A stretch of 64,000 nt of DNA from Macrostomum hystrix. Lineage: Eukaryota > Animalia > Platyhelminthes. Position 1 is the first letter of the stretch; the number at the start of each line of letters is the position of its first letter. This document shows, piece by piece, positions 47,357 through 49,696 of this stretch. The notes beneath the pieces are model-generated. The model did no database searches, was not told where the DNA came from, and worked only from the letters and a program-made list of their open reading frames with translations. The translations under genes were made by a program, and so were the position numbers. Where the stretch lies: contig CATNEN010000042.1 in NCBI GenBank assembly GCA_950097015.1, positions 1 through 64,000 on the forward strand. The letters run 5' to 3'.

Positions 47357-49696
47357 TTAATTGTTAAACAAATTTTCTTTTAGTTTTTCGCACCGTTCCG
47401 CTATGACGGCAGTCGTCAGCTCCGGGGACCTCCAGCCAGTGATTGCCTCGATCAATTTGGCCGCGGTCTCTACCAGGCTGGCGACGCTACGCTGTTCTGG
47501 CGCGGAGTAGGCAAAGTGGACTAGCAGGCAGGCAACGGCCTGTAGCAACTCGCCGCTGCTCACTTTTGGGCCACTGTACGATTGGCGGGTGGGCCTGGTC
47601 GCCGCCTCGAGTCTACTGTCAGATACTATGCTTGCGTAAGTCCGTTGTGGTTGGCTAAGGCAAGGCTGATCCGGCCGGATACCTAAGGGTTGTTGGCCAA
47701 TACCAGAAGGCAAGATTCTTATTGGTTCCTGGAGCAAGGAGTTTGGTTGGTTGGCTGGTGGATTAGCCAATGGCGTTTGGCGAGCGAGTTGGGGTCGATT
47801 CCGCTGGACCCAGGCTTGGACTCGCTGGTTCGCGGCTATATAAGCAGGACAGTTCTTGTCCGTTGATCGGTGAGATCCGTGGCAATTTGGACAGCGCTGG
47901 TTCTCAACCGGACAGCCTTGATTTTGCTCATGTGAGTAGCCACAGGTCCGGCAGCGCGACTCTCGAGTACATTGTCTGGCCAGGTGGCCAAAGGCCTGGC
48001 AGTTGTGGCATTGTGTCGCTCGCAATGGTGGTGGTGCGCGTGACTCTTCGCATTTGTACAGGAAGTACCCAATTTTTATTCCTTGGGTAAGACATCTCGA
48101 CAGAGTGCCGTCATTCAGCGTGAATGCTCGAACAAGAGTGGTGGGCTCATTGGTTGCGGCAGACTTGATGCGTACCACACCACTAATGCGAGGTTCGGAT
48201 TCCTTGATACGTTCCAGGAATTCTGGCAGGTCAATCTCCCGATTGACATTCTTGATGATGAATGAGTGGCTTTTCGGGGCAGAAATGCTGGTCGGTAGTC
48301 TTGGCTTGGCATTTGGTGGTGCATCCGGCTTGCGCAAGGGCAGGCGGCGCTCAACACCTTGACCGTCTATCGTGGAGGTCTTGAGATCGTCAGCCAGGAG
48401 GTGGTGAGCCCCTTGGTAGTCAACCGCGAAAACTTTAAAACCAGTCGTCAGATAGCAGCGCTGGACTGAGCGAATGCGGATTTCAGGGAAGTTCGCCTTC
48501 AGAAACTTCTCAAACCGGAGCTCGTCTGGGAGAAAGTTGCTGAAGGTGAACAGTACTGGCGCGATCTTAGCTTGAGACTGAGTTTGGCTGCGAGGTGATG
48601 AGTGCCGCGAGCCGGCGACCGAATGGAAGGAGCCACCTTCCGATGTTGCGGCAGCGGCTGCAGCAGCCCCGAGGTTGGCCGGATTAGCTACCGGAGAAGC
48701 TACCTCATTTGGAACTGGAGGAGCTGACTCAGGGTCAGAGATACCTTGGCCTTGAAGAATGGTGATATCATGGATGGCTGGTGAGGTGACACGGAAGGTG
48801 AGGTTGATTCGGAGGTCTTTGACGGATGGATCGCGAAGAAGAGCGTGCTGTGTGTGGGTTTGGGTGTCGCCTTTCATGATGAGCAGCGACCCGTGTGGCA
48901 GAGATTGTGTGAAGAGAGTGATGCCAGATGATTTGGAGCGGATGCGGAATTCGCGTGAAGCACCGATGGAGATGGAAGCGATAGTTGGATTTTTGCCGAG
49001 CTCAGGTTCGTCATCGGAGTGAAAACCAATTGAGTCAGCACCTGTTTCGTAGAAATTTACTAGACAAGAATTGAAGGCAGGAAGTCCTAGTTGAGAATGT
49101 AGGAGACTTGCAAGATTGGAGATTGCCGGATGCCAGTTGGAGTTGCCCTGGATTGTCTCACCAGAGTACGTGTAAGGTGGGCCGTACCAGAAGATTTTTC
49201 GAGGTTCGGCTCGTCCATTGGTGTGATGGCGTGAGGCGAGAGGCAGAATGTCAGCAGTGAGAGTTGTGAGCAGATCGTTGGCAATGTCTTTGAAGGCGTG
49301 AGGATAAAACGAGATTGGGCATGAGTCGCCGATGAGGAGCTTTGTGAAGAAACCTTTTGTTGAGATGAGTGGACTGTTGTAGGCTTGGTGTTGAGTTTGT
49401 GAAGAAGAAGAGTCAGATTGAGCAGACTGAACACCTTTGGACAGCTGTGCCTGTTCTTCAGAAGGTGCCCTATTTGAGGAGACGTCGGAAGTGTCCATAG
49501 GACTAACAGTCACCTGAGCGCTGCCGTTCTTTGGAATTGTTGTGGCATCGTCGGCTGGCTTCGGTATTCCCGATTGTCGCCTGGCCTTCTTGTCGTCTGG
49601 CTCTAGAGTCGCCTTAGCGGTGGCGTTGGCCGACTGGCGTTGGCGCTTATCCTTCTGCTGCTGCTGCTTTTGCTGTTGTTGCTTATTTTGTTGCAT
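47357..49696 (-). CDS. LINE ORF1: AlkB-family (ALKBH2/3-like) 2OG-Fe(II) dioxygenase + RRM-like region + three CCHC zinc knuckles
   Basis: PRKIFWYG..YTYSG, FNSCLVNFYETGADSIGFHSDDEPELG, IASISIGASREF, LPHGSLLIM, HAL, RINLTFR (~48791-49260); knuckles CHNCQAFGHLARQC, CRTCGYSHEQNQGC and CPNCHGSHRSTDKNC (47849-48010). Confidence 0.94.
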   Translation of the reverse strand: MQQNKQQQQKQQQQKDKRQRQSANATAKATLEPDDKKARRQSGIPKPADDATTIPKNGSAQVTVSPMDTSDVSSNRAPSEEQAQLSKGVQSAQSDSSSSQTQHQAYNSPLISTKGFFTKLLIGDSCPISFYPHAFKDIANDLLTTLTADILPLASRHHTNGRAEPRKIFWYGPPYTYSGETIQGNSNWHPAISNLASLLHSQLGLPAFNSCLVNFYETGADSIGFHSDDEPELGKNPTIASISIGASREFRIRSKSSGITLFTQSLPHGSLLIMKGDTQTHTQHALLRDPSVKDLRINLTFRVTSPAIHDITILQGQGISDPESAPPVPNEVASPVANPANLGAAAAAAATSEGGSFHSVAGSRHSSPRSQTQSQAKIAPVLFTFSNFLPDELRFEKFLKANFPEIRIRSVQRCYLTTGFKVFAVDYQGAHHLLADDLKTSTIDGQGVERRLPLRKPDAPPNAKPRLPTSISAPKSHSFIIKNVNREIDLPEFLERIKESEPRISGVVRIKSAATNEPTTLVRAFTLNDGTLSRCLTQGIKIGYFLYKCEESRAPPPLRATQCHNCQAFGHLARQCTRESRCRTCGYSHEQNQGCPVENQRCPNCHGSHRSTDKNCPAYIAANQRVQAWVQRNRPQLARQTPLANPPANQPNSLLQEPIRILPSGIGQQPLGIRPDQPCLSQPQRTYASIVSDSRLEAATRPTRQSYSGPKVSSGELLQAVACLLVHFAYSAPEQRSVASLVETAAKLIEAITGWRSPELTTAVIAERCEKLKENLFNN

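Follow-up and report, generated by a model that had tools for sequence, protein, structure and literature searches.

Why would a retrotransposon carry an AlkB-type dioxygenase in the protein encoded by its first open reading frame (ORF1)? The question is raised by a long interspersed nuclear element (LINE) of the flatworm Macrostomum hystrix, found in a stretch of 64,000 nucleotides (nt) that we call the window (positions 1 to 64,000, forward strand, of contig CATNEN010000042.1, assembly GCA_950097015.1). An earlier note, made from the letters of the sequence, had proposed that ORF1 of this element encodes an intact ALKBH2/3-like domain, placed N-terminal to modules resembling RNA recognition motifs (RRM) and to three CCHC zinc knuckles, in an element that is flanked by target-site duplications (TSD) and possesses an intact second reading frame (ORF2). 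We find all of these features in place. Sequence searches and structure prediction confirm a complete AlkB domain of the ALKBH2/3 type, closest to ALKBH3 and fused in frame ahead of the RRM and CCHC parts, and the motifs HxD, distal H, RINLTFR, NxY, WYG and YTYSG all lie in the ORF1 frame where they had been claimed. ORF1 is made up of the following parts, with residue numbers in amino acids (aa) and model confidence as predicted local distance difference test (pLDDT) scores.

47357-49696, minus strand: ORF1, 779 aa plus stop
48767-49369, minus strand: predicted AlkB (ALKBH3-like) dioxygenase domain, aa 110-310 (Pfam, PDB sequence search, AlphaFold2, Foldseek)
49013-49021, minus strand: Fe(II) ligands H226-x-D228 (HSD of HSDDE), with H226 at 49019-49021 and D228 at 49013-49015
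49007-49021, minus strand: HSDDE, aa 226-230
48845-48847, minus strand: distal Fe(II) ligand H284, invariant in the alignment
48791-48811, minus strand: RINLTFR, aa 296-302, with the 2-oxoglutarate arginines R296 and R302; R296, T300 and R302 are invariant
48344-48556, minus strand: RRM-like domain 1, aa 381-451 (AlphaFold2 secondary structure, pLDDT >90)
48044-48268, minus strand: RRM-like domain 2, aa 477-551 (AlphaFold2 secondary structure, pLDDT >90)
47849-48010, minus strand: three CCHC zinc knuckles, aa 563-616 (regular expression; weak Pfam zf-CCHC match)
47360-47557, minus strand: C-terminal three-helix region, aa 714-779, of moderate confidence (AlphaFold2 pLDDT ~62-76)

The protein runs from a disordered basic and glutamine-rich N-terminus through the AlkB domain, a linker, the two RRM folds, the three knuckles and a disordered stretch to the C-terminal helices. 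Further AlkB motifs are NFY (aa 214-216), WYG (aa 170-172) and YTYSG (aa 175-179), and we take R296 and R302 to be the counterparts of the 2-oxoglutarate-binding R269 and R275 of ALKBH3. The Pfam profile 2OG-FeII_Oxy_2 (PF13532) matches ORF1 with 101.5 bits and an E value of 9.2e-29, above the curated cut-off of 31.2, and a phmmer search of PDB sequences returns ALKBH3 (E 1.3e-30), ALKBH2 (3.7e-19) and E. coli AlkB (~1e-5; 9e-06). An AlphaFold2 model of aa 105-315, based on a 72-sequence alignment, reaches a mean pLDDT of 92 and a predicted template modelling score (pTM) of 0.89, and displays an AlkB fold with a double-stranded beta-helix core and an N-terminal nucleotide-recognition lid. The model aligns over ~200 residues to ALKBH3, ALKBH2 and E. 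coli AlkB. The top seven Foldseek matches are human ALKBH3 chains cross-linked to single-stranded DNA (ssDNA; best 8jnk), with template modelling (TM) scores of 0.84-0.88, a root-mean-square deviation of 1.7 Å and 35% identity; ALKBH2 comes next, and ALKBH5 appears at rank 46-50 (TM ~0.64, 16-17% identity). The domain thus has in common with human ALKBH3 (8jnk, 8jnr, 2iuw), and then with ALKBH2, the fold and the lid as well as HxD...H, NxY, RxxxxxR, PYTYS and HSDDE. Human ALKBH3, however, is a stand-alone host repair enzyme, whereas here the domain is part of a retrotransposon ORF1 protein (ORF1p).

The remainder of ORF1 was modelled separately (aa 365-779). Both RRM-like parts fold as beta-alpha-beta-beta-alpha-beta, and the pair matches the tandem RRMs of U2AF65, Pub1 and hnRNP A1 (Foldseek, E ~1e-6). 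The knuckles follow at aa 563-576, 582-595 and 602-616, and their Cys and His columns are conserved in the alignment. With predicted RRM folds followed by CCHC knuckles, ORF1p falls into the RRM+CCHC (type II-like) class. LINEs of the I/Jockey/R1 type resemble the element in their two RRMs and three CCHC knuckles and in an ORF2 coding for an apurinic/apyrimidinic endonuclease (APE) and a reverse transcriptase (RT); the N-terminal AlkB domain is the difference. The ORF1 proteins of LINEs serve as chaperones and coats of RNA, and their known accessory domains are esterases and PHD fingers.

Are the catalytic residues kept, and is the domain maintained by selection? Among 18 retroelement AlkB domains, which span 31-62% overall identity, R166, Y177, N214, Y216, H226, E230, R248, H284, R296, T300 and R302 are present in all, and D228 in 17, the remaining one having E. 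Across the 72 aligned AlkBs H226, H284, R296, R302, N214 and Y216 are invariant, leaving D228 as the sole exception. Comparison of the AlkB domain of the window with those of diverged copies of the same family, here called family A, gives ratios of nonsynonymous to synonymous change (omega) of 0.096 at a synonymous divergence (dS) of 1.0, 0.10 at dS 0.48 and 0.067 at dS 0.20. Counts of synonymous and nonsynonymous differences in AlkB of 25/7, 49.5/18.5 and 81/26 translate into p values for neutrality of 4e-10, 3e-17 and 2e-28, respectively. Between two intact copies of family B, omega is 0.089 for AlkB, 0.092 for RRM+CCHC and 0.089 for ORF2, and 0.18-0.38 for linkers and termini; in copy comparisons the linkers flanking the constrained parts have values of 0.25-0.5. 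Family D and its counterpart in M. lignano are 62% identical overall, the AlkB part being clearly better conserved than the N-terminal part. Neutral evolution, which the earlier note had named among the outcomes that would speak against it, is refuted by an omega of ~0.1, and these substitution patterns indicate that the AlkB domain is under strong purifying selection, constrained like the core of the element.

The domain is not confined to the copy in the window. At least 95 AlkB-domain matches are present in the 220-Mb genome, at identities of 100, 83-95, ~60, 42-45 and ~39%, and many of them sit in open frames of 800-1100 codons. A Pfam scan of representatives yields eight ORF1 types with AlkB (A to H); types A to F are followed by a full ORF2 with APE and RT, while in G and H ORF2 is seen as fragments only. 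Two external elements from other sequencing samples (L049 and L054; handles of this kind, like C17 for a contig, are our own) repeat the same ORF1-ORF2 layout, and contigs of AlkB-LINEs occur in the public runs SRR31628392, SRR31628403, SRR31628434, SRR24204725 and SRR19430222 (Logan/ENA). Proteins of M. lignano that carry the AlkB fusion are annotated merely as 'Fe2OG dioxygenase domain-containing protein', and as a result comparative surveys of DNA-methylation and repair genes could miscount these domains as host ALKB genes.

How did the domain enter these elements? The ORF2 tree unites families A to E with the two external elements in a single clade, with a support of 100 in the approximate likelihood ratio test (SH-aLRT), to which LINEs without AlkB in ORF1 (L052, L055) do not belong. 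In the tree of AlkB domains, 19 of the 20 from retroelements group together (SH-aLRT 96), and monophyly of all 20 is not rejected by the approximately unbiased (AU) test (p-AU 0.56). The AlkB tree also repeats the deep split of the ORF2 tree, A+B versus C+D+E. Taken together, the trees indicate that the AlkB fusion is ancestral to the RRM/CCHC LINE clade A-E, with one acquisition and vertical descent, and that family F is a second lineage. Among stand-alone sequences the nearest are AlkBs of bacterial type, ~200 aa long and 40-50% identical, and it is among such AlkBs that the free tree, calculated without the probable canonical host ALKBH3 exon C10:1693200-1693562, puts the retroelement clade, though weakly supported. 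Animal ALKBH3 (vole, crinoid) and three intronless ALKBH3-like genes of the genome form a separate group in this tree. The AlkB of the element thus differs from animal ALKBH3 orthologues in not grouping with them in the free tree, yet such a grouping is not rejected: a tree in which the retroelement clade is constrained with animal ALKBH3 has a p-AU of 0.63 and scores above the free tree. Since the AU test leaves a sister relation to ALKBH3 standing, horizontal transfer is not claimed. The exon mentioned above, probably part of the host ALKBH3 gene, is 53% identical to crinoid ALKBH3 and 43% identical to the domain of the element.

The three intronless ALKBH3-like genes code for 360-421 aa or more (L032:6567-9962 and L033:8761-9999; G000:C10:304-308k, C41:369-372k and C38:29654k). 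They possess an N-terminal zinc-finger-like region with a weak match to CEP104_ZnF, occur on two contigs as tandem pairs, and join animal ALKBH3 (SH-aLRT 94) on a long branch. Judging from their sequences, they may be fast-evolving host paralogues.

Family F (L031:3113-9314 and L034; G000:C1:8053k and C38:14611k; identical copies on C9, C11, C38 and C39) has the AlkB domain at the N-terminus of ORF1 and, where the RRM/CCHC part would be, a heptad-like stretch that is probably a coiled coil. Its ORF2 product, 1153 aa long, has a CCHC-like motif at the C-terminus, and its RT has a branch length of 3.3. Because several copies have identical match scores, family F looks recently active. A Logan contig from SRR19430222 (L051:2120-7398) encodes a 1012-aa protein whose AlkB domain belongs to the retroelement clade; the downstream ORF has weak RT and GIY-YIG matches, both below the Pfam thresholds. 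This order would be the signature of a Penelope-like element and is regarded here as a lead.

What kind of element is it, and where does it reside? The window contains a minus-strand array of ribosomal DNA (rDNA) with a unit of 11.74 kb and a gene for the small nuclear RNA (snRNA) U1 in every spacer. One rDNA unit contains an extra stretch of 7181 bp between the U1 and 18S genes. The features of this stretch and of its surroundings, including the untranslated regions (UTR) and the spliced-leader (SL) RNA gene, are these.

43222-50402, minus strand: APE/RT non-LTR (lacking long terminal repeats, LTR) retrotransposon, family A, full-length, 7181 bp; breakpoints exact from the filled unit versus an empty-site unit
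50403-50418, no strand assigned: 5' copy of the TSD, 16 bp, TCAGAATCTTTGCCGT on the element's strand (reference unit 14574-14589 aligns to both flanks)
43206-43221, no strand assigned: 3' copy of the TSD, 16 bp, TCAGAATCTTTGCCGT (comparison of empty and filled units)
49697-50402, minus strand: 5' UTR, 706 nt, of which the first 7 nt are CGGTCTC
44425-47277, minus strand: ORF2 open frame, 950 codons plus stop, APE and RT, first ATG at 47169
43222-44424, minus strand: 3' UTR, ~1.2 kb
43166-43200, minus strand: SL exon of the SL RNA gene, followed by GTAAG (exact 35-nt match)
50700-50862, minus strand: U1 snRNA gene, located ~280-300 bp upstream of the 5' end of the element within the rDNA spacer (Rfam RF00003, 151.7 bits)

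Elsewhere in the window, three rDNA units have an empty insertion site, one of them at 14535-14589. As in other APE-type LINEs, ORF2 encodes APE and then RT, and the TSD flank a unit that is missing at the empty sites. The 3' end of the element reads ...GTAGTAAACAAA and has neither a poly(A) nor a simple-repeat tail; membership among the LINEs is not excluded by this end, because a poly(A) tail is missing from many LINE clades. ORF2 matches the Pfam families Exo_endo_phos, Exo_endo_phos_2 and RVT_1 (E 4e-43), with no match to RNase H, and a search for its homologues returns mostly unnamed proteins, the named ones, at 28-31% identity, being labelled 'transposon BS' or 'jockey'. The ORF1 stop lies ~80 nt upstream of the ORF2 frame, which opens 36 codons ahead of its first ATG at 47169 (stretch 47169-47277), and the first endonuclease motif (..LTILHLNCNN..) is located within this pre-ATG part. 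Given that the first ATG sits after the first APE motif, translation of ORF2 is probably AUG-independent, by reinitiation or from a non-AUG start.

The element's place in the rDNA spacer is 5 bp ahead of the SL RNA gene: the SL exon starts 5 nt downstream of the TSD and has the same orientation as the element. The 35-nt SL in the window matches the published SL of M. lignano (PMC8629364) at every position; an Rfam scan for an SL-RNA family gave no relevant match there. The first 7 nt of the element, CGGTCTC, are also the first 7 nt of the SL; with this common start, transcripts driven by the SL-RNA promoter upstream may begin with the first base of the element.

Three family A copies, each in an rDNA unit of its own, occupy the same site of the spacer, one in the window, one on contig C17 and one farther along the contig of the window. 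They differ by 1-2%, nearly always synonymously, with an omega of 0.025-0.034 for ORF2, which argues for a lineage under selection and not for decaying duplicates; by its sequence the lineage is active-looking. Contig C5 has a further full-length copy, at a site unrelated to this one and flanked by a different 16-bp TSD, and strict rDNA specificity is thereby rejected. Among the target-specific LINEs, R1 and R2 insert into rDNA and Tx1-type elements into snRNA and 5S genes. Family A shares with these the choice of a site, as in three rDNA units it lies 5 bp ahead of the SL-RNA gene, but differs from them in that its specificity is not absolute, as the C5 copy demonstrates. Family D is located directly downstream of U5 snRNA genes (L027:2144-2262), in arrays on C12 and C29 that repeat in tandem every ~6.5 kb, and family E inside a 5S rDNA array (L028:247-2218, 9915-10000). 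Three sister families (A, D and E) thus occupy three different multicopy small-RNA gene arrays. For families B, C and F an RNA gene was not found within 10 kb.

Only two public runs contain any ORF1 sequence, both times as contigs and with the library type not recorded. In one small public run, contigs cover ORF1 and the 5' UTR (47400-50200) without ORF2, which filters may hide; this run carries exactly the variants of the C17 copy.

Two other features of the window concern the array itself. A (CCCTAA)n telomeric repeat extends over positions 1-~4400 and abuts the rDNA array, so that the rDNA is terminal on the contig. One 28S gene (window 28892-37808) is broken by an insertion of ~5.1 kb with an ORF of 1102 aa (30736-34044, minus strand) that has an RT domain and no APE match; the insertion fits an R2-type element.

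A question remains as to what the domain contributes to the element. We favour, with moderate confidence, the view that it removes N1-methyladenine (m1A) and N3-methylcytosine (m3C), modifications that block RT, from the element's RNA or cDNA. ORF1p would bind and coat the RNA of its own element, and this coating would place the tethered dioxygenase on the template RNA and the nascent single-stranded cDNA, where it would be concentrated during target-primed reverse transcription (TPRT). There it would oxidatively remove m1A and m3C, perhaps along with related Watson-Crick-face adducts, and since reverse transcriptases stall at such lesions, more full-length copies would then be made. Enzymes of the ALKBH3 type clear m1A and m3C from RNA and ssDNA, and both lesions block reverse transcription. 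In the laboratory, pre-treatment with AlkB lets RT pass methylated RNA; the activity proposed here would be the in vivo counterpart. The best functional analogy is provided by the AlkB domain in the replicase of plant RNA viruses (Flexiviridae), which repairs m1A and m3C in RNA and which likewise lies inside a polyprotein of a selfish RNA-templated replicon (PMC2553587). Unlike the animal LINE, in which the domain belongs to a presumed RNA-chaperone or coat protein, Flexiviridae infect plants and replicate by an RNA-dependent RNA polymerase, without reverse transcription or integration.

Several points weigh against a role in clearing the template. The assignment as a demethylase is drawn from sequence, predicted fold and analogy, and the likeness to ALKBH3 is one of sequence and fold rank, from which a preference for RNA, ssDNA or double-stranded DNA, or for m1A, m3C or another base, is not readable. 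In one family (G, L029) E replaces the Fe-binding D. The public-run contigs, given their unrecorded library type, neither support nor oppose transcription of the copy in the window. Finally, to our knowledge most LINEs manage without an AlkB domain.

Could the enzyme have another target? It might act in epitranscriptomic counter-defence, erasing N6-methyladenine (m6A) or a similar mark with which the host would destabilise or silence LINE RNA. The same tethering logic would hold for such a role, and a retrotransposon-encoded AlkB with m6A demethylase activity is known from Ty3/Gypsy elements of orchids (PMC9289625). The domain of the flatworm element, however, ranks with ALKBH3 and ALKBH2, far above ALKBH5, and it has kept the acidic pair of HSDDE. 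Such a pair suits the positively charged lesions m1A and m3C, and we hold an m6A eraser to be unlikely, though worth keeping in mind. A different possibility is that the substrate is not the element's own template but nucleic acid of the host, at the integration site or close to it: 3mC or 1mA (m3C and m1A in DNA) in single-stranded target DNA, for example, methylated transposon DNA, or small RNAs or rRNA belonging to the occupied loci. The residence of families A, D and E in SL-RNA, U5 snRNA and 5S rRNA gene arrays would agree with this, as would the reports that M. lignano retains DNMT1/3 and that DNMTs make 3mC off-target (PMC9246332). Set against it are families B, C and F, which with no RNA gene within 10 kb make a common host substrate not evident, and the fusion to an RNA-coating protein, which favours action in cis on the ribonucleoprotein; a host substrate therefore seems improbable to us. 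The modification of rDNA or rRNA in a nucleolar niche, which the earlier note had also put forward, is not favoured because the sister families live outside the rDNA, in U5 and 5S arrays or dispersed.

It is also conceivable that the AlkB fold does no chemistry and serves ORF1p as an additional module for binding single-stranded nucleic acid or for oligomerisation. AlkB folds do bind ssDNA and RNA, and catalysis by the present domain is predicted. Yet a pure binding role would not require that the ligands be conserved, and metal and 2-oxoglutarate ligands are kept in the 18 retroelement copies, with the single change from D to E, at overall identities as low as 31%; we regard non-catalytic use as very improbable. 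Practically no credence is left for a passenger, that is a captured and neutrally evolving fragment of a host ALKBH gene, or for a chimera produced by assembly or annotation. Apart from the fact that the host has ALKBH3-like sequences of its own, no support for it was found, whereas the same fusion recurs in many independent copies, in several families and in M. lignano, omega is ~0.1 with p values down to 2e-28, and the best host exon is 43% identical to the domain. Copy number, selection tests and the co-phylogeny of RT and AlkB refute it.

The sole precedent for a retrotransposon AlkB that we found in the literature is the Ty3/Gypsy lineage of the orchid Phalaenopsis (PMC9289625), which likewise gained a dioxygenase of the AlkB family. 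The orchid element is an LTR element with AlkB at the C-terminus of a separate ORF, of the m6A-demethylase type, recent, and present in one plant lineage; the flatworm elements, in contrast, are LINEs with an ALKBH3-like AlkB within ORF1p, ancestral to a diversified clade and found also in a second LINE lineage. A search of the full-text literature, with Repbase and Dfam outside its scope, yielded no description of AlkB in a LINE, and the architecture is, as the earlier note had supposed, potentially undescribed. What appears to be new is a LINE with a new enzymatic accessory domain. If the domain does act as a demethylase or repair enzyme, it would be the first case known to us of a LINE with a template-repair activity of its own.

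What would such an activity mean for the biology of these animals and their transposons? Tentatively, and with more doubt than conviction, we suggest that several unrelated retroelements of macrostomids, namely the A-E clade, family F and possibly a Penelope-like element, have recruited or exchanged AlkB. In that case reverse transcription in macrostomids would meet a general barrier in the methylated bases of template RNA or cDNA, one perhaps imposed by the host, and the retroelements would answer it with an eraser of their own, a new axis of conflict between host and transposon. Plant RNA viruses, orchid LTR elements and flatworm LINEs would represent three independent acquisitions of AlkB by RNA-templated parasites. 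If the domain does clear the template, methylation of the m1A/m3C type would materially limit target-primed reverse transcription in vivo, and Macrostomum, as a laboratory model, makes this question testable in a tractable animal.

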